Assembly: GCF_032444005.1 (NCBI RefSeq)
Contig: NC_091291.1
Location: 131,316,001 to 131,380,000, forward strand
Source: Ranitomeya imitator
Lineage: Eukaryota
Direction of reading: 5' to 3'
Length of the DNA stretch: 64,000 nt
Program-made: the position numbers and the translations under genes
Shown here: one piece after another, positions 2,143-36,517 of the stretch
Position numbering within the stretch: position 1 is the stretch's first letter
Layout: each line of letters begins with the position of its first letter
Notes under the pieces: model-generated
The model's input: only the letters and a program-made list of their open reading frames with translations
The model's database searches: none
What the model was told of the DNA's origin: nothing

Positions 2143-5100
2143 ATGCTGCTGAAAGTCCTAGGTCTGGCGCTAGTTGTGTGCGCAATCACAGGTCAGTAAA
2201 TGTCTAGGTGAATAGTATCTGAGCTTGGGGTTCCAGAACCAAAATCTAAGAGGAAATCCCAGGAACCGTGTGCCACAATATTGCCTTCTTATGTGGTAGA
2301 GGGGCATTTAAGCATCTAAAGTCACCAAACCCTGGGTTGTGACCTCTGCAACCCCCATAGCTAAACACTGATGGGTGAATAAACATGATATACATCAAGC
2401 GATACCATGTATTCGTACTTCAGATATATGTGGGTTTTTTCAAATGATAAATAATAGGATATCTAAACTTTCTAGAACTTTTCAAATATGTTGTAGCCCC
2501 TTTTTAGTACAGTTGATTGATTGGTACTTACATCAGGAGACCACCACCCTTCACTTATTTCAGGGGGCAGAGGTGCTCATCTTATTCTCAAGAGCGAGCA
2601 GAGAGGACCATAGGCCTAAAAGGATTTTCCAGTCTTACTATAATGATGACTGATCCAGCTCAGCTCCTATTGAAGTTTAGAGGAGCCGAGCTGCAGTAAC
2701 CAGGAATGGCCACCACTCAGTGAGTGGAGCTGGAGAGCTCTGACTCCAATCACTGCTATGTGGAGCTGAAAACAGCTGTTCAATGGGGGGCATGGGGCTG
2801 ATCTGATATTGATGAACCATCTTAAGCCTGGTGAACCTCTTTAATAAAAAGTTTATGGCTCCATATGCCACTTTGTTCTCACTTGAATATAAGCTCATCC
2901 CTTCTTTCTTTCTCTTGGTTTCCAGGGGTCTCTAGACCCTGAACTCCACCAAATACTACTCCTGAATTATAACCTATCAACAATCATTAACCCGGCTGTT
3001 GTCCTCGGTCTGGGGAGACCGATTTTGAACTTTGGTATTTTTTGGGGTGTTCAAGATGCGGTTCTGAAACTTGTGGTTGATTGACTTAAATGAGGATGGG
3101 TCGGTCGGCCACGGGTTTCAGAGCCGCATCTTGAATATTTTAAAGAATATTGAAGTTCAAGGTCGGTCGTTTTTGACCGAAGACAACAGCAGGGTTTTAA
3201 GATTTCTCATGTCAATAGTAGAGATGAAAATAATCAATTTTGTATTATATCTTATCAGAGGAATCTGCTTCTTTCTCCTCCCAGACTGAGCTTTCACTCT
3301 CAATTCAGGGGTAAAATCTACAAAATCAGTATTCAAGGAAGACAGATGTTCCCATTACAGTGATGACGGTTGGTGCTTTTAAAATTCTATGGCGAAGGCG
3401 GAGATAGAGGCCGACCCAGATATTCTACTGAAATGACAATTACACTTCTCCATAGAACTTTATAAGCACCAACTGTCATCTCCTATCTCAGTAAGGGGAA
3501 TTTTTGTATTCCAATTTTACCTGTGAATTGAGAATTTTGAGCGCGAAAGATCAGTCCAGGAGGAGAAAGAAGCAGATTTTTCTACTAAGATATATTACAA
3601 AATTGCTTATTGTCTTGTGTATTATTTATGTATGGCAAAAATGAAAGTGAGGGTCACTCTCTATACAATATTATTCTATTTGAATGATGAATAGACTGCG
3701 ACGTTCTAATATCTGTTCTTCTGTCCTAGGATCTCAAGCCGAGATCAGCACTGACCAGATAAGCGATGCCTTCTGGGATTACTTCACCCAGCTGTCCAGC
3801 AACACCAAAGACAAAGTGGAGCAGATACAGCAATCCGACATCAGCAAACAGCTAAAGTAGGTGTCCAAAATATGCGCGGACGGCCGTCACCATAGACTGA
3901 GCCATCCTGGGCCTCTTTCTGTAATAATGTCTCCCATCCTGGGCTTCTTCCAGTAATAATGACCCCTCATCCTGGGCTCCTTCCTTGTATAATGTCCCTC
4001 ATCCTGGGCTTCATCCTTGTATAATGTCCCCCATCCTGTGCTCCTTCCTTGTATAATGTCCCCCATCCTGGGCTCCTTCCTTATATAATGTCCCCCATCC
4101 TGAACTCCTTCCTTGCATAATGTCCCCCATCCTGGGCTCCTTCCTTGTATAATGTCCCCAATCCTGGGCTTCTTCCTTGTATAATGTCCTCCATCCTGGG
4201 CTCCTTCCTTATATAATGTCCCCCATCCCGGACTCCTTCCTTGCATAATGTCCCCCATCCTGGGCTCCTTCCTTGTATAATGTCCCCAATCCTGGGCTCC
4301 TTCCTTGTATAATGTCCCCCATCCTGGGCTCCTTCCTTGTATAATCTCCCTCATCATGGGCTCCTTCCTTATATAATGTCCCCCATCCTGGCCTCCTTCC
4401 TTATACAATGTCCCCCATCCTGGGCTCCTTCCTTGTATAATGTCCCCAATCCTGGGCTCCCTTCCTTGTATAATGTCCCCCATCCTGGACTCCTTCCTTG
4501 TATAATCTCCCTCATCATGGGCTCCTTCCTTGTATAATGTCCCCCACCCTGGGCTCCTTCCTTGTATAATGTCCCCCATCTTGGGCTTCTTCCTTGTATA
4601 ATGTCCTCCATCCTGGGCTCCTTCCTTGTATAATGTCCCCCACCTTGGGCTTCTTCCTTGTATAATGTCCCCCATCCTGGGCTCCTTCCTTGTATAATGT
4701 GCCCCATCCTGGGCTCCTTCCTTATATAATGTCCCCCATCCTGGACTCCTTCCTTGTATAATGTCCCCCATCCCGGGCTCCTTCCTTATACAATGTCCCC
4801 CATCCTGGACTCCTTCCTTGTATAATGTCCCTCATCCTGGGCTTCATCTTTGTATAATGTCCCCCATCCTGGGCTCCTTCCTTATACAATGTCCCCCATC
4901 CTGGGCTCCTTTCTTGTATAATGTCCCCAATCCTGGGCTCCCTTCCTTGTATAATGTCCCCCATCCTGGACTCCTTCCTTGTATAATCTCCCTCATCATG
5001 GGCTCCTTCCTTGTATAATGTCCCCCACCCTGGGCTCCTTCCTTGTATAATGTCCCCCATCTTGGGCTTCTTCCTTGTATAATGTCCTCCATCCTGGGCT

Positions 5101-8100
5101 CCTTCCTTGTATAATGTCCCCCACCTTGGGCTTCTTCCTTGTATAATGTCCCCCATCCTGGGCTCCTTCCTTGTATAATGTGCCCCATCCTGGGCTCCTT
5201 CCTTATATAATGTCCCCCATCCTGGACTCCTTCCTTGTATAATGTCCCCCATCCTGGGCTTCTTCCTTGTATAATGTCCCCCATCCTGGGCTCCTTCCTT
5301 GTATAATGTCCCCATCCTGGGCTCCATCCTTGTATTTTGCCCCTCATCATTGACTCCTTCCTTATATAATGTCCCCCATCTTGGGCTCCTTCCTTGTATA
5401 ATGTCTCGCTTCCTGGGCTCCTTCCTTGTATAATGTCCCCCATCCTGGACCCCTTCCTTGTATAATGTCCCCCTTACTGGACGCCTTCCTTGTATTTTGC
5501 CCCTCATCATGGACTCCTTCCTTGTATAATGTCCGACATCCTGGGCTCCTTCCTTATACAATGTCCCCCATCCTGGGCTCCTTCCTTGTATAATGTCCCC
5601 AATCCTGGGCTCCCTTCCTTGTATAATGTCCCCCATCCTGGACTCCTTCCTTGTATAATCTCCCTCATCATGGGCTCCTTCCTTGTATAATGTCCCCCAC
5701 CCTGGGCTCCTTCCTTGTATAATGTCCCCCATCTTGGGCTTCTTCCTTGTATAATGTCCTCCATCCTGGGCTCCTTCCTTGTATAATGTCCCCCACCTTG
5801 GGCTTCTTCCTTGTATAATGTCCCCCATCCTGGGCTCCTTCCTTGTATAATGTGCCCCATCCTGGGCTCCTTCCTTATATAATGTCCCCCATCCTGGACT
5901 CCTTCCTTGTATAATGTCCCCCATCCCGGGCTCCTTCCTTATACAATGTCCCCCATCCTGGACTCCTTCCTTGTATAATGTCCCTCATCCTGAGCTTCAT
6001 CCTTGTATAATGTCCCCCATCCTGGGCTCCTTCCTTGTATAATGTCCCCCATCTTGGGCTTCTTCCTTGTATAATGTCCTCCATCCTGGGCTCCTTCCTT
6101 ATATAATGTCCCCCATCCTGGACTCCTTCCTTGCATAATGTCCCCCATCCTGGGCTCCTTCCTTGTATAATGTCCCCTATCCTGGGCTCCTTCCTTGTAT
6201 AATGTCCCCCATCCTGGGCTCCTTCCTTGTATAATCTCCCTCATCATGGGCTCCTTCCTTATATAATGTCCCCTATCCTGGGCTCCTTCCTTATACAATG
6301 TCCCCCATCCTGGGCTCCTTTCTTGTATAATGTCCCCAATCCTGGGCTCCCTTCCTTGTATAATGTCCCCCATCCTGGACTCCTTCCTTGTATAATCTCC
6401 CTCATCATGGGCTCCTTCCTTGTATAATGTCCCCCACCCTGGGCTCCTTCCTTGTATAATGTCCCCCATCTTGGGCTTCTTCCTTGTATAATGTCCTCCA
6501 TCCTGGGCTCCTTCCTTGTATAATGTCCCCCACCTTGGGCTTCTTCCTTGTATAATGTCCCCCATCTTGGGCTCCTTCCTTGTATAATGTGCCCCATCCT
6601 GGGCTCCTTCCTTATATAATGTCCCCCATCCTGGACTCCTTCCTTGTATAATGTCCCTCATCCCGGGCTCCTTCCTTATACAATGTCCCCCACCCTGTGC
6701 TCCTTCCTTGTATAATGTCCCCCATCTTGGGCTTCTTCCTTGTATAATGTCCTCCATCCTGGGCTCCTTCCTTGTATAATGTCCCCCACCTTGGGCTTCT
6801 TCCTTGTATAATGTCCCCCATCTTGGGCTCCTTCCTTGTATAATGTGCCCCATCCTGGGCTTCTTCCTTGTATAATGTCCCCCATCCTGGGCTCCTTCCT
6901 TGTATAATGTCCCCATCCTGGGCTCCATCCTTGTATTTTGCCCCTCATCATGGACTCCTTCCTTATATAATGTCCCCCATCTTGGGCTCCTTCCTTGTAT
7001 AATGTCTCGCTTCCTGGGCTCCTTCCTTGTATAATGTCCCCCATCCTGGACCCCTTCCTTGTATAATGTCCCCCTTACTGGACGCCTTCCTTGTATTTTG
7101 CCCCTCATCATGGACTCCTTCCTTATATAATGTCCCCCATCTTGGGCTCCTTCCTTGTTTATTGCCCCATCCTGGACTCCTTCCATGTATAATGTACCCC
7201 ATCATTGGCTCCTTCCTTGTATAATATCCCCATCTTGGGCGCCTTCCTTATATATTGCCCGATCCTGGACTCCTTGCTTGTATATTGCCCCCCATCCTGG
7301 GCTCCTTCCTTGTATAATGTCCCCCATCCTGGACTCCTTCCTTGTATTTTGCCCCTCATCATTGACTCCTTCCTTATATAATGTCCTCCATCTTGGGCTC
7401 CTTCCTTGTATATTGCCCCCCATCCTGGACTCCTTCCTTGTATAATGTCCCCATCCTGGGCTCCTTCCTTGTATATTGTCCCCCATCCTGAGCTCTTCCT
7501 TGTATAATGTCCCCCATCCTGAGCGCCTTCCTTGTATATTGCCCCCCATCCTGAGCTCCTTCCTTGTATAATGTCCCCCCATCCTGAGCTCCTTCCTTGT
7601 ATATTGCTCTCCATCCTGAGCTCCTTCCTTGTATATTGCCCCCCATCTTGGGCTCCTTCTTTGTATATTGCCCCCCATCCTGGACTCCTTCCTTGTATAA
7701 TGTCCCCATCCTGGGCTTCATCCTTGTATAATGTCCCCCATCCTGGGCTCCTTCCTTGTATAATGTCCCCCATCTTGGGCTTCTTCCTTGTATAATGTCC
7801 TCCATCCTGGGCTCCTTCCTTATATAATGTCCCCCATCCTGGACTCCTTCCTTGTATAATGTCCCCCATCCTGAGCTCCTTCCTTGTATATTGTCCCCCA
7901 TCCTGGGCTCCTTCCTTGTATATTGCCCCCCATCCTGAGCTCCTTTCTTGTATAATGTCCCCCATCCTGAGCTCCTTCCTTGTATATTGCCCCCCATCCT
8001 GAGCTCCTTCCTTATATAATGTCCCCCATCCTGAGCTCCTTCCTTATATAATGTCCCCCATCCTGAGCTCCTTCCTTGTATATTGCCCCCCATCCTGAGC

Positions 8101-11100
8101 TCCTTCCTTGTATATTGCCCCCCCCCCCATCCTGAGCTCTTCCTTGTATAATGTCCCCCATCCTGAGCTCTTCCTTGTATATTGCCCCCCATCCTGGGCT
8201 CCTTCCTTGTATATTGCCCCCCCCCATCCTGAGCTCTTCCTTGTATAATGTCCCCCATCCTGAGCTCCTTCCTTATATAATGCCCCCTATCCTGAGCTCC
8301 TTCCTTGTATAATGCCCCCCATCCTGAGCTCCTTCCTTGTATATTGCCCCCCATCCTGAGCTCCTTCCTTGCAGCCCTGGAATCACAATGACTTGTAAAG
8401 TCAACATGTTGGATGGACCTTGACCATAAAGCAGAAGGTTAATCCTCTGTGTTTGTCTGTGACTCTCAATATCTAATTGCTTTTCTATTTATTGTATTGC
8501 TATTTTGCTTCTTTTCCGTTCTCTTCCTCCGCCTCCCGCTTTCCTTCATTACACATTGACATTGTCCATCATTATTACATGCTCTTTCCTCCACTATTTC
8601 ATCATTTTCTTCTTCTTTGTTTTCACCGTGTTTTGCTTTATAAAACATATTTTAATTTATTTCTTAAATGGGATTTCCAGAATCCACAAATTTCATTTTT
8701 TTAAGTGCTACTATTAAAAAGTAACATTTTAATTTTTACTTCATAAATCAATAGTACATATAAAAAACTATTTTATAACAAATATAATCAGAGAAATCAG
8801 TTTCTTTCTCCTCCTGGACTTATTATTTACTCTAAAAAATGTCATGGTTAAAATCTGTCTTCAGTGAATACAGATTTTCCTACTATTGAGCTAAGAAATG
8901 ACAGTTGGTGCTCATAAAGTTCTATGGAGGGCTGAGGAGCAGCGAGAAGAAGACACTGACATTCTATTGCAAGTTCACCTCAAACAATAGTTACATTTTG
9001 AAGTGTTATTACAGGAGAACTTGCAGCAGAATGTCCGTGTCTGTGGATGTTAGACATTAATAATAGATATTGGACAACCCCGTTAATTGAATGGGTTGTT
9101 AATTTTATGTGTTTTTGTGGTGTGAAGAGTTTTCAAGTTTCTTGTAATTTGTCTGCTTAATGGGTTATTCCCATTCTAAAAAGGTATCACATATCTTAAG
9201 AATAGGTAAAAACTTGCTGAACACTATGTATCTGACCTCTTGTTCTTCCCCCAATGCCCAAACTGATGGTCACACTTTGCTTGCCACTGGTCCACTGACT
9301 ACTGGGTCTTCCCCCGATGCCCAGAGTGATGGCCACACGTTCATGCCACTGGTCGATTCAATGACCGCTGGGTCTACCCCCGATGACCAAAGTGATGGCC
9401 ACACGTTCATGCCACTGTTCCATTCAATGACCGCTGGGTCTACCCCCAATGGCCAGAGTGATGGCCACACGGTCATGCCACTGGTCCATTCAATGATCGC
9501 TGGGTCTACCCCCGATGGCCAGAGTGATGGCCACACGGTCATGCCACTGCTCCATTCACTGACCGCTGGATCTTCCCCCGATGGCCACAGTGATGGCAAC
9601 ACATTGTTTGCCTCTGGTCCATTCACTGACTGCTTGGTCTTCCCTCGGTGCCCAGAGTGGTGACCACACGTTCATGACACTGCTCCATTCACTGACCACT
9701 GGATCTTCACCCGATGGCCACAGTGATGGCAACACATTGTTTGCCTCTGGTCCATTCACTGATCACTGGGTCTTCCCTCGGTGCCAAGAGTGATGACCAC
9801 ATGGTCATGCCACTGGTCCATTCACTGACCTCTGGATCTCTCCTCGATGCCCAGAGTGATGACCACACGTTCATGCCACTGCTCCATTCACTGACCACTG
9901 GATCTTCCCCCGATGGCCGCAGTGATGGCCACACATTGTTTGCCTCTGGTCCATTCACTGACAGCTGGGTCTTCCCTCAGTGACAAGAGTGATGACCACA
10001 CGGTCATGCCACTGGTCCATTCACTGACCGCTGGGTCTTCCCCCGATGCCCAGAATGATGGCCACACATTGTTTGCCACTGGTCCACACGTGTGGGCTAC
10101 TTGTCCATTGATACCTATGGGACTGCCACAGAGAGTGAAGGGCGATGCTCTACTAATTCTGTCAAAGCAAAGTCCATGAAAATACCATAGAAGTGTCCAC
10201 AATACTTTTATGCACATAACAAGAATTTTTTTTTTATATTTTAGAGGTCGTTCTATAATTATTATTTTTTGCTCTCCACAGTGGTCTAATTGACGAAAAC
10301 CTGAAGAGCATTAACCTTTACGCAGGAGAACTGCAGCAAAAGCTTGTACCATTTGTCAAGCAGATGCATGACCAACTAACTCAAGACCCTGAAAAACTGA
10401 AGGAAGAAATTAGACAGGAGCTGGAGAAATTGAAGGACAAGCTGATTCCTTATACCGAAGAGGTGCAGAAGCAGCTGACTGAGAATACTGAGGAGCTTCG
10501 GGTTAAACTTGCACCTTACGCGGAAGAGATTAGAGCCCAGCTGGACAAAAACACAGAGACACTCATTGAGCAGCTGAAGACTGTAACAAAGGACCTAGAA
10601 ACCAAGATCAGAGAAAACACAGACCAGGTGCAGTCATCATTGACCCCATATTCCCAAGAACTCAAGGCTACCATAGACGACAATGTAGAACAGCTCAGAA
10701 AGCAACTAATTCCCATCACCGATAAAGTCAAAGATAACGTTGATCAACAACTCCAAGAGCTATATAAAAACCTAAAACCCTACGCAGAGGATGTACAGGA
10801 AGAACTGCGCAACCAGATCAAGAACATGGACTTCCAGATGAAGAAGAACGTCGAGCAGATGGAAAGCAAAATGCTTGAGTTCACTGGACAACTGAAAGAG
10901 CAACTCTACCCCTATGCCAATGAGCTGAGAACCAAGCTGGATGGAGATATGACAAACGTCAAGCAGACATTGGAGCCCTACCTTACCGAGATGAACCAGA
11001 AGATGGACCAGAAGATCGTAGAGTTCAAAGACACAATGACCCCATATGCAGATGCCCTCAACAAGGATCTGGTACAGAGAGTCGAAGACATGAAGAAGAA

Positions 11101-11209
11101 GTTGGGAGAATATACTGTAAGCGTTCAGGATCAAGTGGAGTATCTGCAGAAAGATGTCCGAGACAAGATCCAAGATTTCATCAATAAGGGCATTTCCACC
11201 GAAAACTGA
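2143..11209 (+). CDS. apoa4: Apolipoprotein A-IV, copy 1 (most canonical); join(2143..2191,3730..3856,10282..11209), 367 aa
   Basis: Signal peptide MLLKVLGLALVVCAITG; exon 3 SQAEISTDQISDAFWDYFTQLSSNTKDKVEQIQQSDISKQL; large last exon of 22-mer Pro-punctuated amphipathic repeats with FQMKKN and LQKDVRDKI motifs colinear with human APOA4. GT-AG introns in phases 1 and 2. AATAAA at 11565. Confidence 0.93.
3247..3594. mobile_element. Palindromic non-autonomous DNA element (MITE); related copies at ~8780-9010 and ~51660-51995
   Basis: Arms AATCTGCTTCTTTCTCCTCC / GGAGGAGAAAGAAGCAGATT. The internal GACAGTTGGTGCT…TTCTATGG motif is shared by the three copies. Confidence 0.6.
3902..8371. repeat. 32-bp minisatellite (~4.5 kb) in apoa4 copy 1 intron 3
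   Basis: Unit CCTTCCTTGTATAATGTCCCCCATCCTGGGCT. Variants shift to GTATATTGCCCCCCATCCTGAGCT in the 3' part. Higher-order blocks recur at an offset of about 1890 bp. Confidence 0.97.
9245..10085. repeat. ~63-66-bp tandem repeat in apoa4 copy 1 intron 3
   Basis: Unit GGGTCTTCCCCCGATGCCCAGAGTGATGGCCACACGTTCATGCCACTGGTCCATTCACTGACCGCT with two alternating subtypes. Confidence 0.9.
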
Positions 11210-13287: not shown

Positions 13288-13326
<39 letters not shown>

Positions 13327-13496: not shown

Positions 13497-14071
13497 GCAT
13501 GTACTACTAGATAAGTATCCAACCCCTATTATAGGTAGATATCCTGAAGATTGCTGAATAGATGACATTGTAATGGGAAAAAATGGAGTGCGTGGTATGT
13601 TAATGCCTCCCGTCGTCCAGCTCAATGGCTCGATACTCCTTGTTCTAGTTTCCACAATGTTTTTACCAAAAGGAAATAACATTATAGTAATCTTGACCCA
13701 CTAAGCACTTTCCCATGGCTAACAAATGCAAATCAGACAAATAATAGAAGAGCTCTTTGGACTCCCCATTGTACCCTCTAAGCCTGCCATTGTGTATATT
13801 CCCAGCTACGACCTGCAATAACCCGTCTCTCCATCACCACAAGCATTTGTGATGGGGTCCGGTTGTTATTTCGATGTCAGCTGCAGCTAGCGAATAAAAC
13901 CACTCGGAGGTCTTCTCCTCCTTCGTGATTATGACTCAGACACAAGAACTCACAAAGCTCTTCAAACCTCCAACATCGCTCTGAAAAGAGGAACACATCA
14001 ATGATTCCACATTGTAAATCCGACCTGCCCACAAAGCTGACCTGGAGCATAGCCAGAGTCACAGAGGAACT

Positions 14072-14129
14072 CATAAAAAGAACCGGCAGCCATCAACTTC
14101 AATACTGACCCAGAAACACCAAAGGGCAG
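14072..14129 (+). other. apoa4 copy 2 TATA-like element (CATAAAA) and non-coding exon 1
   Basis: AAACACCAAAGGGCAG|GTAAGGAGCAATCT is nearly identical to the copy 1 exon 1 end. The next acceptor is TGCAG|14366. Confidence 0.65.
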
Positions 14130-14421
14130 GTAAGGAGCAATCTTCTCTCCAGGAGTAACACCGTCGAGAACTTATAGATTAAATTAATGTTTAGCTATAA
14201 TTAATAAATCTAATAATCATCTAACAATCACCAGATGATAATGACAATACTTATGGATCGCACTTGTTTTTTAAATTTTTTATTTTTCAGTGATGAGGAA
14301 TGAGTCTTAATTAGGGCTGAGTCTTTTGAGAAAGTCTAACATGATTACTTTTTTTTTTTCTGCAGTCTTAAGTCATTGGAATTTTTTAGAACTTCCGTTG
14401 ACCCATCCTGTGACTCAAAAA

Positions 14422-17400: not shown

Positions 17401-19201
17401 TCTTTATTTTATAAAGCTATGAATAACATTGTGAATTCCTGAGATTCCTATAATATTGAGCTTTTCATAAAAATATTCAGGCCGCAGATGTCCTCAAAAC
17501 AAAGTACAAGCCAACCGCAGATGCCCCCGATGCAGTGCACCAGCCATGAGCACATCTTACAAAAGTGTATCAGTCACAGTTTCCCCTAAGATGTCGCATT
17601 CGATAGGGGCTGCACAGCGACTTTGACCGTAAAATAATACAACATTGGTCGACAACTTACAGCTAAAGATAGTGAATCAGGTCGTGTTGAAATCCAGTAG
17701 ATTTGGATTTTTGTTGGCCGACGTCAAGGTTGAGTCAGCTTGGGTTTTGTAACTTGACCATGTTCTCCATCGTTAGATGCAACTTAGGAGATCAAAGTTA
17801 CTATCTTAATGATGGAATGTCAACGTCAAAGGACAATTACATATCATAATCTGGGGTGGATGCAAAACCCCTGTGCAGGGGCAACATGTTGGCCCATTGC
17901 TTTCCAAATACTCTCATTTGATGAGCATGAAATGCTAGTGTTGCACCCCCAAAAACTGTGAGCAATAGATGGAAATCATTACCATAATTCCGAATGTGCA
18001 ATATAGTAGACATTGAGTTTAATTTTTCTTCTCTGGTAAAAATGGGCCCCCTTACAAGCAAGGACCATATGTGATTGCTCAGGTTGCAATTAGTTTATGT
18101 CCTCTCCAGAACTTAAAGGAACCGAGTGGGATTGTGTACCCTTTAGAGCCTTAGGTCCCTACTATATGGCCAAACATCACAATATTGACGCTGACACTAT
18201 AATGCGTATAGGGGCCTCCACCTTCACCAATATGATGGTTTCTGGAGTTATCCTGATTGATTCTTTTCTTCCACAGTGCTCTCATTGAAGAAAACCTGAA
18301 GAGTGTAAACAATTTGGATGATGAATTTGTGGGTCAGCTGGTTCCTTTGGCCAAGCAAATCCATGAACAACTGATGAAAGACTCTCAAACCCTGAGAGAA
18401 CAGGTTAGACAAGAGATGGAGAAGTTGGCGGTCAAGTTGTCTCCATATACGGATGAGGTGCAAAAACAGGTGAACAGGAATGCAGAGGAGCTCCAGGTCA
18501 AATTGGCTCCACATGCCAAGGCGTTTCAAGCCCAATTAGATGAAAGCACCCAGGTTCTCAGTGAGCAGCTGAAATCTATATGGAAGAACCTAGAGATGAC
18601 CATCAAAGACAATGCTGACCATTGGCAGGCGTCAGTGGTCCCATACTCCCAGGAACTGAAAAGTGTAATAGATGGCAACATGGAGCAGCTGGAGAAACAG
18701 CTCAAACTCATCAACAATCACATAAAAAGTAATATTGATGAGCAAATGGAAGAGTTGTATAAAAGCCTCATACCCTACGCAGAAGACGTGAAGGATGAGC
18801 TTCACAAACAGATCGAGAACATAGACTTTCAGATGAAGAAAAATGCTGAGCAGATGGAGAGCAAAGTCTTGGACTTTACTGGGAAACTACGAGACCAACT
18901 TTACCCCTATGCCAATGAGCTAAGAACCAAGTTAAATAGTAATACATCAAATGCCAAACAGACGATGGAGACATATCTCACGCAGATGAACCAGCAGATG
19001 GACCACAAGATTGGAGAGTTTAGGGAGACGATAACGCCCTTTGCAGATGCCCTCAACAAGGCTCTAATAAAGAGAGTGAAAGACATGAAGAAGAAACTTG
19101 GAGAATACACAGTGAGCATGCAGGATCAGATGGAGTACTTGGAGAAAGACGTTCGAGACAAGATCCGAGACTTCATCACCCAAGGGGATCCAGAAAACTA
19201 A
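14422..19201 (+). CDS. apoa4: Apolipoprotein A-IV-like, copy 2; join(14422..14467,16501..16618,18277..19201), 362 aa
   Basis: MLAKVSVLVLAMSITG | YQAKVPSDQISEFFWNYLSRLAGGTTEKVQQSDFSKQL | last exon colinear without gaps with copy 1 (DFQMKKN, QLYPYANELRTKL, DMKKKLGEYTVS). Canonical splice sites in phases 1 and 2. AATAAA at 19325. Confidence 0.92.
14760..16140 (+). mobile_element. Degraded L2/CR1-clade LINE 3' fragment in apoa4 copy 2 intron 2
   Basis: Translation LIHSRLDYCNALLMGLP…LHWLTICCRVQYKL is typical of the C-terminal RT region of L2 elements. Frameshifted and interrupted. Confidence 0.7.
15195..15790. repeat. ~119-bp tandem repeat (about 5 copies) inside the L2 fragment
   Basis: CATCTCATCCTGATCTATGTCTACCACCATTCCCATGCCCTCCACAGTGCCCTTCCCTAAATTTCC… recurs every 119 bp. 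Confidence 0.85.
17033..17305. mobile_element. PIF/Harbinger-like MITE, left end eroded
   Basis: Inverted arms GGTTCATATAGCATTTTTTCCTAC / GTAGGAAAAAATGCTATGTGAACCCAGCC with internal symmetry. Confidence 0.55.
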
Positions 19202-19494
19202 GATTAGAATGTAAGATTTATGGTTAAAGAGTGAAGACAGATAGTGAAACGCAAACTTGTATCATAATTTCTAGAAATATATATGTGAATAGATGTAAAT
19301 GTAAAAGAAATACAAATAGCAGTCAATAAACACTGAGATTGAAACGATTGCACGTTGCATGTAGTGTTTTCATATGCCGCGTCCAAAAACCTAAAGGTGT
19401 TATCTAGCCAGAATAAAATAATTAGGGGGACCATGGATGGGGTACAAATAACTCTAACTCGCATACTCATGTACTGTCCAACCGTGGAAAATCA

Positions 19495-23215: not shown

Positions 23216-24827
23216 CAGGTCCTTCTCAAAAAATTAGCATATAGTGTTAAATTTCATTATTTACCATAATGTAATGATTACAATTAAACTTTCATATATT
23301 ATAGATTCATTATCCAGCAACTGAAATTTGTCAGGTCTTTTATTGTTTTAATACTGATGATTTTGGCATACAACTCCTGATAACCCAAAAAACCTGTCTC
23401 AATAAATTAGCATATTTCACCCATCCAATCAAATAAAAGTGTTTTTTAATAACAAACAAAAAAACCATCAAATAATAATGTTCAGTTATGCACTCAATAC
23501 TTGGTCGGGAATCCTTTGGCAGAAATGACTGCTTCAATGCGGCGTGGCATGGAGGCAATCAGCCTGTGACACTGCTGAGATGTTATGGAGGCCCAGGATG
23601 CTTCAATAGCGGCCTTAAGCTCATCCAGAGTGTTGGGTCTTGCGTCTCTCAACTTTCTCTTCACAATATCCCACAGATTCTCTATGGGGTTCAGGTCAGG
23701 AGAGTTGGCAGGCCAATTGAGCACAGCAATACCATGGTCAGTAAACCATTTACCAGTGGTTTTGGCACTGTGAGCAGGTGCCAGGTCGTGCTGAAAAATG
23801 AAATCTTCATCTCCATAAAGCATTTCAGCCGATGGAAGCATGAAGTGCTCCAAAATCTCCTGATAGCTAGCTGCATTGACCCTGCCCTTGATGAAACACA
23901 GTGGACCAACACCAGCAGCTGACATGGCGCCCCACACCATCACTGACTGTGGGTACTTGACACTGGACTTCAGGCATTTTGGCATTTCCTTCTCCCCAGT
24001 CTTCCTCCAGACTCTGGCACCTTGATTTCCGAATGACATGCAAAATTTGCTTTCATCAGAAAAAAGTACTTGGGACCACTTAGCAACAGTCCAGTGCTGC
24101 TTCTCTGTAGCCCAGGTCAGGCGCCTCTGCCGCTGTTTATGGTTCAAAAGTGGCTTTACCTGGGGAATGCGGCACCTGTAGCCCATTTCCTGCACACGCC
24201 TGTGCACGGTGGCTCTGGATGTTTCCACACCAGACTCAGTCCACTGCTTCCTCAGGTTCCCCAAGGTCTGGAATCGGTCCTTCTCCACAATCTTCCTCAG
24301 GGTCCGGTCTCCTCTTCTCGTTGTACAGCGTTTTCTGCCACATTGTTTCCTTCCAACAGACTTACCATTGAGGTGCCTTGATACAGCACTCTGGGAACAG
24401 CCTATTTGTTGAGAAATTTCTTTCTGGGTCTTACCCTCTTGCTTGAGGGTGTCAATGATGGCCTTCTTGACATCTGTCAGGTCGCTAGTCTTACCCATGA
24501 TGGGGGTTTTGAGTAATGAACCAGGCAGGGAGTTTATAAAAGCCTCAGGTATCTTTTGCATGTGTTTAGAGTTAATTAGTTGATTCAGAAGATTAGGGTA
24601 ATAGGTCGTTTAGAGAACCTTTTCTTGATATGCTAATTTATTGAGACAGGTTTTTTGGGTTATCAGGAGTTGTATGCCAAAATCATCAGTATTAAAACAA
24701 TAAAAGACCTGACAAATTTCAGTTGGTGGATAATGAATCTATAATATATGAAAGTTTAATTGTAATCATTACATTATGGTAAATAATTAAATTTAACACT
24801 ATATGCTAATTTTTTGAGAAGGACCTG
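23216..24827 (-). mobile_element. Tc1-family IR/DR transposon, full length (1612 bp)
   Basis: TA target duplication. 200-bp TIRs (23216-23415, 24628-24827) with 2 mismatches by hand comparison, and inner/outer direct repeats (TCTCAA[A/T]AAATTAGCATAT). Confidence 0.96.
23494..24498 (-). CDS. Tc1 DD34E transposase, intact, 334 aa
   Basis: MGKTSDLTDVKKAIIDTL… with a paired-like HTH. Catalytic motifs FSDESKF, FQHDLAPAH and NPIENLW with 34 residues between the second D and E. Ends in KGFPTKY*. Confidence 0.95.
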   Translation of the reverse strand: MGKTSDLTDVKKAIIDTLKQEGKTQKEISQQIGCSQSAVSRHLNGKSVGRKQCGRKRCTTRRGDRTLRKIVEKDRFQTLGNLRKQWTESGVETSRATVHRRVQEMGYRCRIPQVKPLLNHKQRQRRLTWATEKQHWTVAKWSQVLFSDESKFCMSFGNQGARVWRKTGEKEMPKCLKSSVKYPQSVMVWGAMSAAGVGPLCFIKGRVNAASYQEILEHFMLPSAEMLYGDEDFIFQHDLAPAHSAKTTGKWFTDHGIAVLNWPANSPDLNPIENLWDIVKRKLRDARPNTLDELKAAIEASWASITSQQCHRLIASMPRRIEAVISAKGFPTKY

Positions 24828-28926: not shown

Positions 28927-30077
28927 TAGATACCTGTCAACCAAACAGCTTTAACCTCCCAACTTGTCCCCCATACACATGCAAGTTCTCCCCGTAAACT
29001 TACGATTCTAATCCTACGGTAGGTTCAGTCTAGCATTAACATATGTTCAGGTTAGAGTTCAAGTCTGCAGTCAATCAATGTGACTGCAGGCTTGTGAATC
29101 CTCACAGCTCGCACACTGTGCGCTGTCAGGATTCTCCGATGTCAGCACTGGGAAAGGGTGGTTATGTGACCGCAAGTGCGCAATTTGCATATTTCTGGCC
29201 ACATTCCGACTAGACTGTGTCTGGCCTCGCTTATTTCAATTGCATTGAGCAAAGGCTGCACACGACTAGTTGGCATGTGACTGCATAATAGAAGTCACGT
29301 GCCCACCCACTCCTGTTCCCCAGTGCGTTGTGAGGATTCACACGTCTGCAGTCACACAGACTTGAACCCCAACCTCCTTTCAAGATCTCCTCACATGAGC
29401 AATATAACATTGGTGAGACCCACATTTAGCTTATATTCATGGCATATCTTCTGGATGTATGGGCTTGAGAACACCCTTTTAACAACAATCCTTATGTATA
29501 AATCAGTTTTTCATCCCTTTAAGGATCTTAGAGGTGATTTAGGATCTCTGAGACCATAAAACTAGTACAGGAAGTCTGTGCGGGGTGTCTTTGTGTCTCT
29601 CCTGGAAGTGGTCTTTGTTCCTCTGCTCCTGCTCTCCTGTCTGCCAAACTACATACCAGCAGACAGGAGAGCAAGCTATTGGAAGACGGCAAACGGAATG
29701 TACGCTGTGAAATGACAGAAAGCAAGTTCCATCACCTATAGTGCTGGCAGAAAGCTGATTTAGAGAATGGGTGGCATGCTTTTAAGCAAGGGAATTGGAA
29801 CAGTTCCTGGACATATTAGACTGGCATATGCACCAATGTAGTTTTTACTTGTCCCGGGGAACGAGGTCAGGAAGACCGGGCTTTTCTACACATTTTCTGC
29901 TCTTGATATAGTTACATTATTCCGGTATTGCGCATTCTGTTTCCTCATGACTTTTCATTGCTTGTAAACTCTCGAGTTCATCAAATTTCCTGCGTTACCT
30001 TGAAATCAGAGACGCGTCAGGGACTCCGCGCTGTAACACAAGCTGCGATGCCAACAGCCAGACGACGTCCGCGCTCA

Positions 30078-30137
30078 TATAAATATCGGCTTACAGGACC
30101 AACACCGAATCCGGACAAGGAGACGAGCAGCCACCAG
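30078..30137 (+). promoter_or_regulatory. apoa4 copy 3 TATA box (TATAAATA 30078-30085) and non-coding exon 1
   Basis: The exon ends CCACCAG|GTAAGGAGC, the same donor context as copies 1 and 2. The next acceptor is CTCCACAG|32209. Confidence 0.65.
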
Positions 30138-30288
30138 GTAAGGAGCGCACCCTCTTCCTTGGGTGTCAGGGGTTATACTGGACCTATAGATTTCGCACCA
30201 CATTCCTCTAGTTTCCTTCTGATCATTTATTTATAGGATTTTTACCCTTTTTCTATGACATTGATAATATACGGCTCGGATCCCTTAA

Positions 30289-30563
30289 AGGGGTTGTCCA
30301 TTACTGTCATGTTTATGACCTATCCTTGGAAAAGGACACGATGGGGTCCGGCACTGATCATCTGATACCTGTAGTTGCAGTTCCGTATATATTGCTCTCA
30401 GCTCCCATTCACTTGAACATGAGCTGATCTGCAGTACCTGGGATTGGTGACTACACAGCGCGCACAGAGCTGTGCGGTTCTTACTCCGTACACTGCTTAC
30501 ACCTTGCCTGCCGCGCAAATAACAGCTAATCAGTGTGCGTGCTGTTAGCAGTAGAGAGCCCCT
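30289..30563. mobile_element. T2/Kolobok-type MITE
   Basis: TTAA on both sides; termini AGGGGTTGTCC…GAGAGCCCCT. Confidence 0.6.
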
Positions 30564-30599
30564 TTAAGAGTATTTCTGCAAAGACATAGGGCTAAGTGG

Positions 30600-31570
30600 T
30601 AACATGTCTCCTTGTGGAAATTTTCCTCTGGGAAATGTAATAGGCAAATTGCCTCTTCAGAGAGGAAAAGGACTAGAAATTTATAGCACCACCTGTTGGA
30701 TGCAGCAAACATTATCGACCCTTTAACAAGTCGTGTAATATGACTTAGGATAAAAGCCAAATCAGTATCTCAATTCGCAGACACGGTGTTTCGTGGGTGT
30801 TGCCCCTCATTAGTGCAAAGTTTGAGAACTGATCTGGCTAGGTGACAGGCTCTAGACTGAGGTCTAAGGGGCAATGTTTCTCCTTGTGGAGAGAGACATA
30901 CCGACTCTGGCATGCCAAGGTAAGGAGGCTTATACGCCGTGCAATGCTCCTCCGGGAAATGTAATAGGCAAATTGCCTGTTCAGAGAGGAAGAGGACTAG
31001 AAGCACCACCTCTTGGATGCAGCAAACATTATCGACCCTTTAACAAGTCGTGCAATATGACTTAGGATAAAAGCCAAATCAGTATCTCAATTCGCAGACA
31101 CGGTGTTTCGTGGGCGTTTCCCCTCATTAGTGCAAAGTATGAGAACTGATTTGGCTAGGTGACAGGCTCTAGACTGAGGTCTAAGGGGCAATATTTCTCC
31201 TTGTGGAGAGAGACATAGCGGCCATGGCATGCCAATGTAAGGAGGCTTATTCGCTTCGCCGTGCAATGCTTCTCTTGGAAACTGAATATGCGAATTGCCT
31301 GTTCAGAGAGGAAGAGGACTTGAACTCTATAGCACCACCTGTTGGTAGCAGCAATCCTAGTCACAGAGAAACATTACCCCTCAGACCTCCATCCAGAGCC
31401 TCTCTCGTAGCCAAATCAGATCTCATACTTTGCACTGATGAGGGACAACACCCCGAAACACCGTGTTGAGATTTTCGTTAAAGGATTGAGAGTGACTTGT
31501 AGAATTGCTGCTTCCAACAGGAGGCGCTATAGAGTTAAAGTCTCTGAAGAGGCAGTTGCATACAAAGACA
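30600..31570. repeat. ~310-bp direct tandem duplication plus partial third and inverted copy, in apoa4 copy 3 intron 1
   Basis: TGTAATAGGCAAATTGCC…GACACGGTGTTTCGTGGG…GGAGAGAGACATA appears at ~30638 and ~30960. The reverse complement appears at ~31365-31560. Confidence 0.75.
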
Positions 31571-31829
31571 TAGAAAAGAGATTGAGCTTTTATTTAAAAA
31601 ACATAACATTCTAGGAATTAATATACCAATAGTGAAATTCCCTTAAGGGAAAAAGTAGAGAAGATGCCACTTTCTGAGAGTAGTCATTTTAAAAAGAGAA
31701 ATTAAAATCAGGGAATTTGCTCACTTGATGGAATTGTGGATATTTGGGAACAATGCCTATAAATGCATGAAATAAATCCAATATGTGCAGCCGACCTGGT
31801 GTGCTGATGGAAATTCCTCCAATGAGGAT

Positions 31830-32070
31830 GGAGATACAAGGTAAAGGGCGCTCTCACGATAGAAGATGTAGTTATTTACCAAAAAAGTACAAGAAAAAAA
31901 AAATTAAAAATACAATGCGTTTCGGGGGTATCCTTCTTCAGGTGTTTGAGACACCTGAAGAAGGCTGGATACAGTCGAAACGGGTTGTGTTTTTCAATAC
32001 ATTTTTATTTTCTGGTATGGTAATTTGATTTAATCTTCTATCATGGGAGCGCCCTTCACCCGGTATTTCC
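31830..32070. repeat. Inverted-repeat PLE-type remnant carrying back-to-back hammerhead motifs
   Basis: Arms GGAGATAC..AAGGGCGCTCTCACGATAGAAGAT / ATCTTCTATCATGGGAGCGCCCTT…GTATTTCC. The centre has CTGAAGA…CGAAAC on both strands. Confidence 0.7.
31948..31993 (+). ncRNA. Minimal type I hammerhead ribozyme motif
   Basis: GAGACAC-CUGAAGA-A-GGCUG(GAUA)CAGUC-GAAA-C(GG)G-UU-GUGUUUU. The core is intact, helices I and II pair, and helix III is minimal. Confidence 0.6.
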
Positions 32071-32221
32071 ACCCTTATTCTAGGGATTAAGCAAATTTTT
32101 CACAAAAAAAACCATTTATCTGATGCAAAAATGCGTGTTTCATGATACTGGGTATCAAGTGATTGTAATAAAATGTTATGGAATAATGGAGAAAATTTCA
32201 CTCCACAGGGTATAAAAGAAA

Positions 32222-35200
32222 ATGTTGGCTAAAGTGGTAACGTTCACTCTTATAAGCATCATCACAGGTCAGTCCTTGTTGATTCTTTTAAATCACTTCT
32301 CATTCTGGGCTTAGGAGTCCTGTGGGCGGTCCCAAAAAATGATTGACAGTTATATATGTATACACAGTCTGTAATGCCATTCCCCGGCTTTTCTTTTCTT
32401 TTTTAGTTAACTATCACAGAAATTCCCTCTAATACTGTCTTTAGTTCTTTTTTTAGCTTATCTTTTCCTGTTAAATCTCTTCTTAAAGGGAATCTGTCAC
32501 TAGGATCAACCCGCCTAAGCCGCTTATATTGGCATGCAGGTAACTGAAAGTCGAATAAAATGATACCTTGATATCTGCGATCCGATGTTTTATTACAGAG
32601 AAATCCATGTGTTTCTTAATATGCAAATGAGTTAAGATCTATGGGTTGGGACATAGATCTCATGGAGAAATCTGCCTCTAGAGCGGATCTTAAATAAAAG
32701 GGGGCGTTACCAGACATATAGATCATGGGAGCAGACGGAGAGTCATTAAATGTCTCACATTGGTAACGACTCCTTTAATTTACAATGCATTCTAGAAGCA
32801 GTTTCTCGGGAAGATCTATGCCCGGCCCATAGATCTTAACATCTCATTTACATATTAAGAAAAACATGGATTTCTCTTGAATAAGACATCGGATCGCATA
32901 CATCAAGGTATCATTTTATTCAGCTTCCTGGGACCTACATGCCCATATAGATGGCTTAGGAAGGTTGATCCTCCCAACACATTCCCTTTAATGAGTAACT
33001 AAATCTTTTAAAGGTTTAAGTTACCCTTTAAAAGTTACTTGTGTTATTTTTATCTACATTATTGGGAAGGTAAAAGGGGCAATTTCTCGACGACTTTTAC
33101 CATCCTGTTCCCTCATGAGCTTTCACGTCAGACCCCGCTGATCTCATGGTTGAACATAAATCTTGCCAATTCAATATAAAAATAACGATTGTCATTCTTC
33201 GCTCAGGTTCTCTCGTCGATGACAACACGAAACTACTGGATGATGCCCTCTTGTCTTACCTCAGCCTCCTGAGCGGCAGCACCAAGGACAGCAGCTCCTC
33301 ACAAGTGTCCCTCTCTGACTTCAGCAGCCTCTTGGAGTATGTGAGATGAAAGTAACAGCAGCTAAATGTTTACAAGTAGAAGGAAACTCTTGATACAATG
33401 TATACAATCATTATATGGAAGCATACTCCAATTATTTGTTAAAACTTTTTCTATTCTTTATAGTTTATCTGTGTGTTGCATTTGGGCTCCGAATTCATCA
33501 TTGCTGTTTCTCCACTTCTCTGGAGTAATTTGCTGCCTTTTGTCATGATCCAGGTCGGGGGTTTGCTTCTTGCTTTTCCTTCCTCGGTCTGGTTATGGTG
33601 GGGTTAACTTTTTCTGCCTCTCTTTGGTTCGTGGGTGGCTATTTAGTGCTGCCACTCGTGGTAGCATTTGTCAGTGATAGTTCCAGTCCCTGGCTTGAGC
33701 AACTGATCCTTATACCCTAGTGATCCTTCTGCCTTTGACCACCTGTATTTGTGCCTGACCTGTTCCCTATCTCTGACTTAGAGTGTGTTTGGTGGTTCCC
33801 TACAGTGTATGACTCGGCTTGAATTCTGAACCCCGCCTCCTGCTTTCCGTCTGTTACTACGTTTCCCGTTCTGGCTTTGACTCTTTGGCTCATACCCTGA
33901 CTACATCTTCTGTCTCATGTTTTGGATCCCATGCTCCCGCCTGGTTCCGATTTCTGTCTTGTCTCTGACCACGTGCATTGCTGTGACCTCCGGTACTTAT
34001 CTTCCTGTTTTTTGCTGACCGGACTGTCTAACTTCTCTGCCACCTCCTTGTGGCGCTCCGCACTTTGCACTGTGGTGCTACACGGTGAGTGCTACCGGTT
34101 TCCCCTTACCTGCGCCCCCTGGTGGAGGTTGCGTGCAACTGCCTTGCAGGTGCATTACATTATCACTGACAAATGCTACTAGAAATGGCACCAATAAATA
34201 GCCACCCAGGAACCAAAAAGAGGCAGGAAAACTTAACCCCACCATAACCAGGCCAGGGAAAGAAAAGCAAGAAGCAAACCCGGACCTGGATCATGACACC
34301 TTTTAGTAGCTTAAGGCTTTCACACTAGCGTCGAATTCGGCCCGTCGCATTGCGTCGGGCCGAGATTCCGATGCTAGCGTTTGATGCGCCGCACAACGGG
34401 TGCAGCGGATACATTTCTCTGGCGCATCCGCTGCCCCATTGTGAGGTGCGGGGAGGTGGGGGCGGAGTTCCGGCCGCGCATGCGCGGTCGGAAAAAGCGG
34501 TCCGTCGGCAGCAAAAAACGTTACGTTTAACGGTTTTTGCTCTCGGCGGTCCGCCACAACACGGCGCAACCGTCGCACGATGGTTGCGACGTGTGTCAAT
34601 ACGTCGCAATGCGTCGGTAATGTTACTCTATGGGGCAAAAACGCATCCTGCAAACAACTTTGCAAGATGCGTTTTTTCCCCTAAACGACGCATTGCGACG
34701 TATTCAAAACAACGCCAGTGTGAAAGTAGCCTTAGTATTTGCTCCTTATTCTCTATACATTTTGTGTCAATTTCTAAGTTGTCTTTCTTTTTTGAGTCTT
34801 TCATTTTTTATATTTTTTCTCAACAACATCGCTTATCAGATTTTTTAGACAGATTCATGAAATGTTGTATTTTTTTGTGGTACATTTGACTCCAGTCCCT
34901 GACTGGAGTAAGGTTTCTGGAGGTTTTCAATTTGCGAATTGTCACGCTGCAGCTATGCACGTAACTGCAACTTCCACCAGATGGCAACAGAGTGGAAGGA
35001 AAGTAACAAGTCTGCAAGGGCAGACCTGCAGTGCTTCAGCGAAGCTACCACTAGGTGGCAGCAGAATAGTTAAACAAGCCGAGTCAAAACCTAGACTGTC
35101 ACACAGTACAAAGGAAAAAAAAACAGTAACAGAGTCAGAGGAGAGCCAGAGGGTCAAACACCAGACAAGAAGCAGAAGTATCAGGAACCTGAGGCAAAGT

Positions 35201-36517
35201 CAAATCAGAGTCAAAGCCAAGTCAAACACAGAAATCAAAGAGCAATCAGGAAACACAAAGACAAGATTGGCATGGAAGGAGAGATAGACATGGGCAAGGT
35301 CAAAAGGTACAGCACATCGGTCTGATCCGAGCGCTAATGCACAGGGACTGGCCAAGGGTGACATCATTACAGCTGCATGTATTTCTATCAAAGTGTCCCA
35401 GTGGGGTAGGGAGAGCCGCTGCCAGTCCGTGTATTAGTCATCTGATCTCGGACTGAGGTGCGCGGACGTCTGAATGAGCCGCACGAGTGTCGTCCAAACT
35501 TGTCGATATCGGTGAGTTCGGCCAACATTAGTCCTTGGTGTATGGGCGTATTTAGAGACTTTTTTGCCTATCATAGGAAACAGAATTCTTGCACTTTTCC
35601 AAGTAAATCATTTTCTTGCTTCCAATTTCAGCAGCACTCTAACATTGGGTGAAGAAGAGAAAAGCGTCTACGCACAACTACTGAACAAGGTCTCGTTTTT
35701 TGCCAAAACAGTCTATGAACAGGCGACAAAAGACTCGGAAAAACTCCAGTTGGAGTTGGAACAGCTGAAGATCAAACTCATCCCTTATTCCAAAGAGGTG
35801 ACAAAGCTGCTAAGTAAGACCACAGAAGAGCTGGAGATTACGCTCAATCCCTACGCTGATGAACTTCAGACGCAAGTCGAAAAAATTACTTTGGAATTTA
35901 TCAAAAAGTTAAAAAGTTTCAGTCTAGACTTGAAGTTGCCGTTGGTCTTGTACTTCCAAACACTGGACGTTAGAATGGCGGAGTGCCTTAATGCGCTGAG
36001 GAGCGCGGTCGCAACATGCACTGAAAAAGTCAAAGAGACGATCGATCTGCAAGTTGCGGCTTTGTATCAAAGTCTTTCTCCTTTTGCGGAAGAAATGCAA
36101 GACGCTTTGAGGAAACAACTGGGGAACTTGAACTTTTCGATGAAAAAAAGCGTCATCTTGATTGGGAGCAAGATCTTGGAGAACACGTCAATGCTGGAGA
36201 AGGAAATGAGTCTTTGTATCAGTCAGATAAAGGAGAAGAAGGGCTCTCTCTACCGGAATGTCCGATACACAGTAACATCCTGCCTGGTCGATTTGAGCCA
36301 AAAGATTAAAATGTTTAATTCGGTGATGACCCCCTTTGGAGAAACTCTCACCAAGTCAGTCGTATTCCGCATTGAGAACATACAAAACTTGCTTCAGGGA
36401 TCTGCAGCTGTGAATCTGCAAAACAAGAAAGATATTCTAGAAAAGAGCATTTTCGACACGATCAGCAACTTTATTAACAATAGCACCTTGCTGACCAACG
36501 CAAGCGTCACTGAGTGA
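32222..36517 (+). CDS. Divergent apolipoprotein A-IV-like, copy 3; join(32222..32267,33207..33336,35632..36517), 353 aa
   Basis: Signal peptide MLAKVVTFTLISIITG (compare copy 2). Same intron phases 1 and 2. The last exon aligns with copy 1 (KDSEKL, LIPY, LNPYADEL, SPFAEEMQ, FSMKKS, MTPF). No stops or frameshifts. Confidence 0.85.
32487..32987. mobile_element. T2/Kolobok-type MITE (501 bp) in apoa4 copy 3 intron 2
   Basis: TTAA TSD on both sides; termini AGGGAATCTGTC…ATTCCCT; long internal inverted symmetry. Confidence 0.85.
33541..34298. mobile_element. TGT…ACA element with ~140-bp TIRs and 5-bp TSD, related to the solo-LTR-like family
   Basis: TGTCATGATCCAGGTC… / …GACCTGGATCATGACA. TSD CCTTT at 33536-33540 and 34299-34303. 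The left end is homologous to the 26960 element. Confidence 0.8.
34315..34731. mobile_element. PIF/Harbinger MITE
   Basis: TIR GGCT(AC)TTTCACACT…AGTGTGAAAGTAGCC, with TAA/TTA flanks and a CpG-rich palindromic interior. Confidence 0.8.
34940..35300 (-). mobile_element. Truncated solo-LTR-like copy (same family as 26960-27519)
   Basis: Begins TGTCACGCTG. GCTACCACTAGGTGGCAGCAGAATAGT…AAGCCGAGTC is the reverse complement of the 27360-27420 segment. Confidence 0.65.

Follow-up and report, generated by a model that had tools for sequence, protein, structure and literature searches.

The amniote gene order is APOA1–APOC3–APOA4–APOA5–ZPR1, with APOA4 present as a single gene. What occupies the place of APOA4 in frogs, and since when? 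We examined a 64-kb stretch of the Ranitomeya imitator genome (assembly GCF_032444005.1, contig NC_091291.1, positions 131,316,001–131,380,000, forward strand; hereafter the window), which contains zero N. A first-pass annotation of this DNA had described three complete APOA4 copies and implied an expansion peculiar to this frog lineage. Our results indicate that the window very likely contains a conserved APOA4–APOA5–ZPR1 segment in which APOA4 is represented by three tandem, same-strand paralogues that arose from two old duplications. As gene-family expansions go, it is genuine yet rather ordinary.

Three tandem genes upstream of APOA5 and ZPR1

Homology searches were run exon by exon with single-exon queries. 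The upstream coding exons were located by tblastn with the N-termini of relatives (fish and reptile APOA4-like proteins), and their boundaries were read from the sequence. Only four apolipoprotein loci are present in the window, all on the + strand: three APOA4-type last exons and the last exon of APOA5. The three APOA4-type genes are arranged head to tail (~1758–11209, 13956–19201 and 29973–36517) upstream of APOA5 and ZPR1, an arrangement that agrees in both order and strand with the amniote APOA4–APOA5–ZPR1 segment. The location upstream of APOA5–ZPR1 given in the first-pass annotation is thus confirmed by an APOA5 last exon at ~53 kb and a ZPR1 domain at ~60.2 kb on the same strand. Neither APOA1 nor APOC3 is present in the window, which thus does not show the 5′ border of the cluster. 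The exons of the three genes are as follows; a slash marks the exon–intron boundary, UTR stands for untranslated region, and the coordinates of non-coding exon 1 are conserved-block limits of which only the 3′ ends are fixed.

1758–1927, +: copy 1, 5′ block and non-coding exon 1; TATA-like motif at ~1872; ends at 1927 with donor CAG/GTAAGGAGC
2100–2191, +: copy 1, exon 2; 43 nt of 5′ UTR, ATG at 2143, putative signal-peptide codons; donor ACAG/GTCAGT, phase 1
3730–3856, +: copy 1, exon 3 (127 nt); conserved DAFWDYF motif; donor AA/GTAGGT, phase 2
10282–11209, +: copy 1, last exon (308 codons and stop); conservative APOA4 copy; AATAAA at 11565
13956–14129, +: copy 2, 5′ block and non-coding exon 1; ends at 14129 with the same donor 12-mer as copy 1
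14366–14467, +: copy 2, exon 2; 5′ UTR, ATG at 14422, putative signal peptide; donor ACAG/GTCAGT, phase 1
16501–16618, +: copy 2, exon 3 (118 nt); 52% identity to copy 1 exon 3; donor AA/GTAAGT, phase 2
18277–19201, +: copy 2, last exon (307 codons and stop); AATAAA/ATTAAA at 19325 and 19412, the poly(A) signal lying 124 nt past the stop
29973–30137, +: copy 3, 5′ block and non-coding exon 1; aligns with copies 1 and 2; ends at 30137 with the same 12-mer
32206–32267, +: copy 3, exon 2; 16 nt of 5′ UTR, ATG at 32222, putative signal peptide; donor ACAG/GTCAGT, phase 1
33207–33336, +: copy 3, exon 3 (130 nt); Ser-rich version of the APOA4 exon; donor GA/GTATGT, phase 2
35632–36517, +: copy 3, last exon (294 codons and stop); 3′ UTR extends past 36900 (contig cover to 36900)

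The coding sequences measure 1104, 1089 and 1062 nt in copies 1, 2 and 3 (all multiples of 3, i.e. 367, 362 and 353 codons), with no frame breaks or internal stops. All splice junctions are GT..AG, and in every copy coding intron 1 is in phase 1 and coding intron 2 in phase 2. Within the 64 kb, the ACAG/GTCAGT donor of the signal-peptide exon has exactly three occurrences, always at homologous places, while 0.19 are expected by shuffling. The earlier description of three complete genes that share intron phases and this donor context therefore stands. The N-termini contain hydrophobic stretches of 16–17 residues that are homologous to the APOA4 signal exon and are putative secretion signals. 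Copy 3 coincides with an R. imitator protein named ‘apolipoprotein A-IV-like’ (P0023): its last exon is 100% identical, its exon 2 is 100% identical to residues 1–16, and both the 353 codons and the gene span of 4296 bp are the same.

A four-exon plan with a non-coding first exon

The 5′ block of copy 1 is 69% identical to positions 13956–14143 of copy 2. The donor 12-mer at the end of exon 1 is found exactly three times in the window, in the exons ending at 1927, 14129 and 30137, where 0 are expected by shuffling. When the 5′ flanks of the first two copies are aligned, they share a conserved block with a TATA-like motif that ends at this donor, followed by a short intron with an acceptor 43–56 nt before the ATG (introns 1927/2100 and 14129/14366). 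A three-way alignment locates the corresponding block of copy 3 at a distance of 2.1 kb on the 5′ side of the exon with its ATG. The 5′ UTR intron of copy 3 (30137/32206) has grown to 2.1 kb and includes a 317-bp repeat in 2.2 copies at 30624–31324.

Transcript contigs support the use of this exon in copy 3 in two independent ways: (i) spliced R. imitator contigs of runs X1 and X15 start aligning exactly at 32206, just past a CAG acceptor, and carry 27–55 extra 5′ letters, none of which could be located in 31800–32205; and (ii) four cDNA contigs of the copy-3 orthologue in another hyloid (L003–L006) run through the TATA-like motif straight into the homologue of the ATG exon, and three of them (L003, L005 and L006) extend further 5′ with an 85% match to 29973–30046. 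Because non-coding exon 1 is conserved in the copies and used in copy-3 transcripts, the frog genes have four exons, the first being non-coding, rather than the three described at first. This four-exon plan is family-typical and ancestral, unlike the mammalian APOA4 plan: mammalian APOA4 is said, after Karathanasis et al. in 1986, to be without a 5′ UTR intron, which the frog genes keep.

The promoters and open frames of all copies had also been described as retained. The frames are indeed open, but the 5′ blocks do not lie directly before the ATG exons and are found 0.2–2.1 kb upstream. With gene starts ~200–2200 nt 5′ of the ATG exon, the locus begins near 1758 and not at 2143. A TATA box was also considered for the motif TATAAAAG, which precedes the ATG of copy 3 by 11 nt, and was rejected because an upstream exon is spliced to position 32206 in the transcripts.

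All three copies belong to APOA4

Against the apolipoprotein family PF01442, copies 1, 2 and 3 score 205, 178.5 and 65.9 bits (E 5e-18 for copy 3), so that copies 1 and 2 are above the 90-bit cut-off and copy 3 is below it. Among solved structures, human APOA4 is matched far better than the best APOA1 by copy 1 (E 3e-71 versus 2e-18), copy 2 (2e-59 versus 3e-10) and copy 3 (2e-27 versus 3e-4), and all three copies are by far closer to human APOA4 than to APOA1 or APOE. Protein identity is 63% between copies 1 and 2, 36% between copies 1 and 3, and 31% between copies 2 and 3. Amphipathic 11/22-mer helices punctuated by Pro are kept in all three copies and are weaker in copy 3, with hydrophobic-moment amphipathicity z values of 8.3, 7.9 and 4.3 (the last still significant). 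A truncated APOA4-like protein of the salamander Pleurodeles shares 52% identity with copy 1 over 86 residues and leaves copy 3 unmatched, which fits copy 1 being the conservative copy. The graded divergence noted earlier, with copy 1 conservative, copy 2 intermediate and copy 3 remodelled, is thus recovered in both family scores and identities.

Phylogenetic trees were anchored with APOA4 of snake, monitor, alligator, echidna and horse, APOA1 of turtle and bat, Xenopus APOE, and bird and frog APOA5. In a quick 94-row tree, copies 1–3 fall within the tetrapod APOA4 clade (Shimodaira–Hasegawa-like approximate likelihood-ratio test, SH-aLRT, 99) and an anuran clade (100). In a careful 44-row tree, the anuran clade with copies 1–3 has a support of 100/100. 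In both trees the copies lie within or beside amniote APOA4 and outside the APOA1, APOE and APOA5 clades, so neither copy 2 nor copy 3 groups with APOA1 or another apolipoprotein family.

Remodelling of copy 3

The last exons of the three copies differ in composition as follows (pI, isoelectric point; GRAVY, grand average of hydropathy).

pI: copy 1, 4.8; copy 2, 5.2; copy 3, 7.5
Charged residues: copy 1, 107; copy 2, 96; copy 3, 73
GRAVY: copy 1, -0.96; copy 2, -0.85; copy 3, -0.11
Cys: copy 1, 0; copy 2, 0; copy 3, 4
Pro-aromatic junctions: copy 1, 8; copy 2, 6; copy 3, 4

The four Cys of copy 3 (177, 188, 254 and 276 in P0023 numbering) are kept in nearly all hyloid orthologues, and three of them stand in for the aromatic residue of former Pro-aromatic helix junctions. 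Copy 3 also has a conserved C-terminal N-glycosylation motif (a predicted sequon). Its AlphaFold2 model is all-helical (predicted local distance difference test, pLDDT, 73.6). Foldseek alone returned no significant match of this model to the PDB; a second comparison (VIA) gave as the best natural match dimeric human apoA-IV (3S84_B; Z 14.6, root-mean-square deviation 2.1 Å, 159 collinear residues).

The dendrobatid copy-3 proteins have exactly 11 residues, i.e. one helical-repeat 11-mer, fewer than those of Rhinoderma and Eleutherodactylus (at 35900–35935), and Bufo, Hyla and Engystomops have shorter gaps at the same spot.

These features suggest that copy 3 may have kept the APOA4 helical-bundle architecture while changing its surface (near-neutral pI, about one-third fewer charged residues, four conserved Cys and the C-terminal N-glycosylation motif), and could have a modified role. 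Copy 1 would have the canonical APOA4 role on chylomicrons and high-density lipoprotein, and copy 2 may be a subfunctionalised duplicate. A far more specific idea, which we regard as quite improbable, is that the copy-3 type is a disulfide-stapled, N-glycosylated and more hydrophobic helical-bundle plasma carrier of lipophilic small molecules across neobatrachian frogs, no longer an exchangeable lipoprotein-surface apolipoprotein, and possibly co-opted for dietary alkaloid transport in poison frogs.

Selection, transcription and the question of decay

Copies 1 and 2 differ with a ratio of non-synonymous to synonymous substitution rates (dN/dS) of 0.13–0.29. Among copy-3 orthologues (R. imitator, Dendropsophus and Engystomops), the ratio is 0.17–0.32 by NG86 and maximum likelihood, and 0.34–0.62 by YN00. 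These ratios show purifying selection. Copy 3 is transcribed and correctly spliced: contigs of runs X1 and X15 join all three of its coding exons and a contig of run X5 joins the last two, with the joints (32267 to 33207 and 33336 to 35632) at the predicted GT..AG sites. These runs come from three studies, and a possible lack of transcription, raised along with the first-pass annotation, is therefore dismissed for copy 3. The copy-3 orthologue of another species is found as an intronless open reading frame (ORF) of 1089 nt in four runs. Judged from selection and composition, sub- or neofunctionalisation of the copies is plausible.

These data also bear on the explanation that copy 2 and/or copy 3 are decaying, non-functional duplicates with frames open by chance, which we consider unlikely. 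Decay would account for the Pfam score of copy 3 (below the gathering cut-off), its amphipathicity z of 4.3 compared with ~8, and its YN00 dN/dS of up to 0.6. It does not fit the 353-codon frame of copy 3 being kept across more than 10 genera with dN/dS well below 1, the conservation of its four Cys and sequon, or its spliced transcripts in three studies and those of its orthologue in four runs of another species. In copy 2, the frame is open over all 362 codons, the splice sites follow the consensus, and the conserved 5′ block, the poly(A) signal and the low dN/dS given above likewise speak against decay.

Age and distribution of the duplications

Orthologues of copy 3 occur in at least 10 hyloid genera (Ranitomeya, Phyllobates, Anomaloglossus, Bufo, Leptodactylus, Hyla, Dendropsophus, Rhinoderma, Eleutherodactylus and Engystomops) and form a clade with a support of 100/100. 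Proteins of Rana temporaria (XP_040181295.1) and Pseudophryne corroboree (XP_063799357.1) join this hyloid clade with 100/99, and share with the copy-3 type a C-terminal N-x-S/T-L-L motif that copies 1 and 2 are without. Because of this grouping and the shared motif, the copy-3 lineage is, on sequence evidence, older than the split of Hyloidea, Myobatrachidae and Ranidae, and is not particular to the Ranitomeya lineage. Copies 1 and 2 are sisters in the 44-row tree (99/95), and forcing them into one group with the hyloid copy-3 clade costs 49.7 log-likelihood units (approximately unbiased, AU, test, p 0.003).

Alignable sequence between copies 1 and 2 is confined to the 5′ block and the exons (69%, 68% and 73% identity), and the introns give no alignment. 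Their synonymous divergence (dS) is 0.83–2.0, i.e. 1.3–2.1 times that among copy-3 orthologues of different hyloid families. This suggests that the copy 1/copy 2 duplication probably dates back to crown Hyloidea or earlier.

An alternative is a recent dendrobatid- or lineage-specific triplication, in which the divergence of copy 3 would reflect fast evolution after a young duplication. We find this very unlikely, and for copy 3 it is already largely refuted by the orthologues in at least 10 hyloid genera and by the position of Rana and Pseudophryne inside the copy-3-type clade with their shared motif. The AU test likewise speaks against a clade of copies 1, 2 and 3, and neither the lack of intron similarity between copies nor a copy 1/copy 2 dS that equals or exceeds the dS between hyloid families fits a young event. 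What a young triplication has in its favour is that copy-1/2-type sequences are known from this window alone, and hence from one species. The expansion peculiar to this frog lineage implied in the first-pass annotation is accordingly not upheld. Furthermore, since NCBI names copy-3-type proteins ‘apolipoprotein A-IV-like’ in many frogs, the expansion was in part, i.e. for this type, already annotated across anurans.

Two further explanations have next to no probability. One is that one of the upstream copies is in fact APOA1, or a different member of the family, under the wrong name: amniote APOA1 sits 5′ of APOA4, so a 5′ gene could be APOA1, but the idea is already refuted by last exons of 307–308 codons in copies 1 and 2 (the size of APOA4), by human APOA4 beating APOA1 by 40–50 orders of magnitude, and by the two copies being sisters among the anuran APOA4 proteins, a long way from the APOA1 clade with its turtle and bat sequences and the Anomaloglossus A1-like protein. 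The other, an assembly artefact (haplotigs or a mis-joined repeat) in a region whose long tandem arrays are hard to assemble, conflicts with copies that share at most 73% DNA and 63% protein identity and have unrelated introns, and with copy 3 being an independently annotated R. imitator protein of the same 4296-bp span.

The reading of three tandem paralogues from two old duplications would involve two unequal-crossover events. The older one would have separated the conservative lineage (copies 1 and 2) from the copy-3 type after the frog–amniote split and before the divergence of Hyloidea, Myobatrachidae and Ranidae; the younger one would have separated copy 1 from copy 2, probably no later than crown Hyloidea. 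Each gene keeps the same plan. A conserved 5′ block that includes a TATA-like motif is followed by non-coding exon 1, by the exon that contains the 5′ UTR and signal peptide and ends at a phase-1 intron, by an exon of ~40 codons that ends at a phase-2 intron, and by a single large exon made up of amphipathic 11/22-mer helices. Given this shared plan, each copy is predicted to yield a secreted, helical, lipid-associating plasma protein.

Several observations weigh against this reading. In the 44-row tree, support is weak (71/79) for a tetrapod APOA4 group that is monophyletic with respect to APOA5 and the APOA4-like genes of fish, and the group submitted to the AU test was picked after inspection of the tree. 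No copy-1/2-type frog protein was found in two protein libraries, not even from R. imitator, although relatives of copy 3 and of APOA5 do occur there, so that near-saturated dS is the one measure of the age of the copy 1/copy 2 duplication. Word searches with the last exons of copies 1 and 2 returned distant fish and reptile proteins or no match, and an exhaustive representative search with copy 1 returned no match that covered most of the query at more than 41% identity (short partial matches, 44–52%). We treat this absence as a library gap rather than a biological one; possibilities include missing, fused or mis-modelled annotation near the satellite-filled intron. The RNA support is that of copy 3, and runs X1, X5 and X15 have coded identifiers and a guessed kind (‘RNA?’); they are taken as RNA because intron-skipping contigs hardly arise otherwise. 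The disulfides and glycosylation of copy 3 are predictions. Finally, helical-bundle matches are generic, and designed bundles score as high as APOA4, so the structural match of copy 3 shows retained architecture, not function.

The surroundings of copy-3 orthologues in other frogs were also inspected. No other apolipoprotein exon lies within 10 kb on either side in Dendropsophus (L001) or Engystomops (L002), and the gene tables at the copy-3-type entries of R. imitator, Pseudophryne and Rana list no neighbour gene. In Anomaloglossus baeobatrachus (GCA_048569485.1), an APOA1-like gene (ACNLHF_002096) lies two genes before the copy-3 orthologue (ACNLHF_002098) by locus tags. A gene ~5.5 kb upstream of this orthologue has a 777-residue product with no Pfam match on record, and the Anomaloglossus record has no separate copy-1/2-type protein.

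Comparison with known APOA4 systems

The closest known system is mammalian or amniote APOA4 (structures 3S84 and 9HX4), which resembles the frog copies in (i) chromosomal location and orientation with respect to APOA5 and ZPR1; (ii) the PF01442 domain, the positions and phases of the two coding introns, and a large last exon of Pro-punctuated amphipathic 22-mers; and (iii) being the best sequence match of all three copies and the best natural structural match of the copy 3 model. It differs in being a single gene where the frog has three, and copy 3 departs from mammalian APOA4 by having four Cys, a pI close to neutral, N-glycosylation motifs and a smaller number of Pro junctions.

Teleost apoa4 paralogues (e.g. 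zebrafish apoa4a and apoa4b.1, gene names as in PMC12271627) are likewise a lineage-specific tandem expansion of APOA4-type genes that encode secreted amphipathic apolipoproteins, of an origin independent of the frog one. The fish APOA4-like proteins analysed here are ~250–260 amino acids long, fall outside the tetrapod APOA4 clade, and none is remodelled in its Cys and sequons as the frog copy-3 type is. The history of the teleost paralogues was reportedly traced by Otis et al. in 2015.

Among the anuran proteins that NCBI names ‘apolipoprotein A-IV-like’, P0023 is identical to copy 3 and the others are its orthologues or clade-mates; these names are automatic. No description of the frog APOA4 paralogy, its age or its features was found in the literature searched. 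APOA-IV has been reported in poison-frog plasma, and a liver apoa4 transcript is raised in wild, chemically defended frogs (10.1101/591115), the copies not being separated in that study. Frog ‘apoa4’ transcripts or peptides, such as those from liver and plasma in that work, may therefore stem from any of three genes.

The present analysis provides an exon-level map of the amphibian APOA4 expansion. It points to an old, selectively maintained and expressed APOA4 paralogue in frogs, whose Cys, glycosylation motif and lost charge depart from classical exchangeable apolipoproteins, and which may serve as a natural experiment in how a lipid-binding helical bundle that opens and closes is re-purposed. 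The accepted view of the APOA1/C3/A4/A5 cluster is unchanged.

Neighbouring genes and repeats

The 3′ neighbours of the three genes and the large tandem arrays of the copy 3–APOA5 spacer are as follows.

37798–39257: tandem array, 39 bp × 38, copy 3–APOA5 spacer
40936–44633: tandem array, 22 bp × 168, copy 3–APOA5 spacer
47296–51147: tandem array, 50 bp × 77, copy 3–APOA5 spacer
~53044–53916, +: APOA5, last exon; PF01442 125 bits; 88% identity to APOA5 of Anomaloglossus baeobatrachus (P0059)
59960–60433, +: ZPR1 exon(s), zinc-ribbon domain at ~60.2 kb; PF03367 63.8 bits

The APOA5 last exon is placed in the APOA5 clade of the 44-row tree with a support of 100/99. Long tandem arrays are plentiful in this region. 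The last intron of copy 1 (6.4 kb) is mostly satellite (3902–8371 and 9232–10086), with a 32-bp unit in 140 copies (87% matches) and, beyond it, a 66/133-bp array, and this satellite gives rise to long spurious minus-strand ORFs. The spacer between copies 2 and 3 contains an intact Tc1/mariner-type transposase ORF of 355 codons (23494–24561, − strand) with DDE_3 (E 9e-19) and HTH_Tnp_Tc3_2 (E 8e-15) domains. The 16-kb spacer between copy 3 and APOA5 is largely filled by the three arrays listed. The putative first exon of ZPR1 is immediately preceded by a 21-bp array (56676–57345) and immediately followed by a GC-rich 24-bp array of 57 copies (57939–59266), which is probably located in ZPR1 intron 1.

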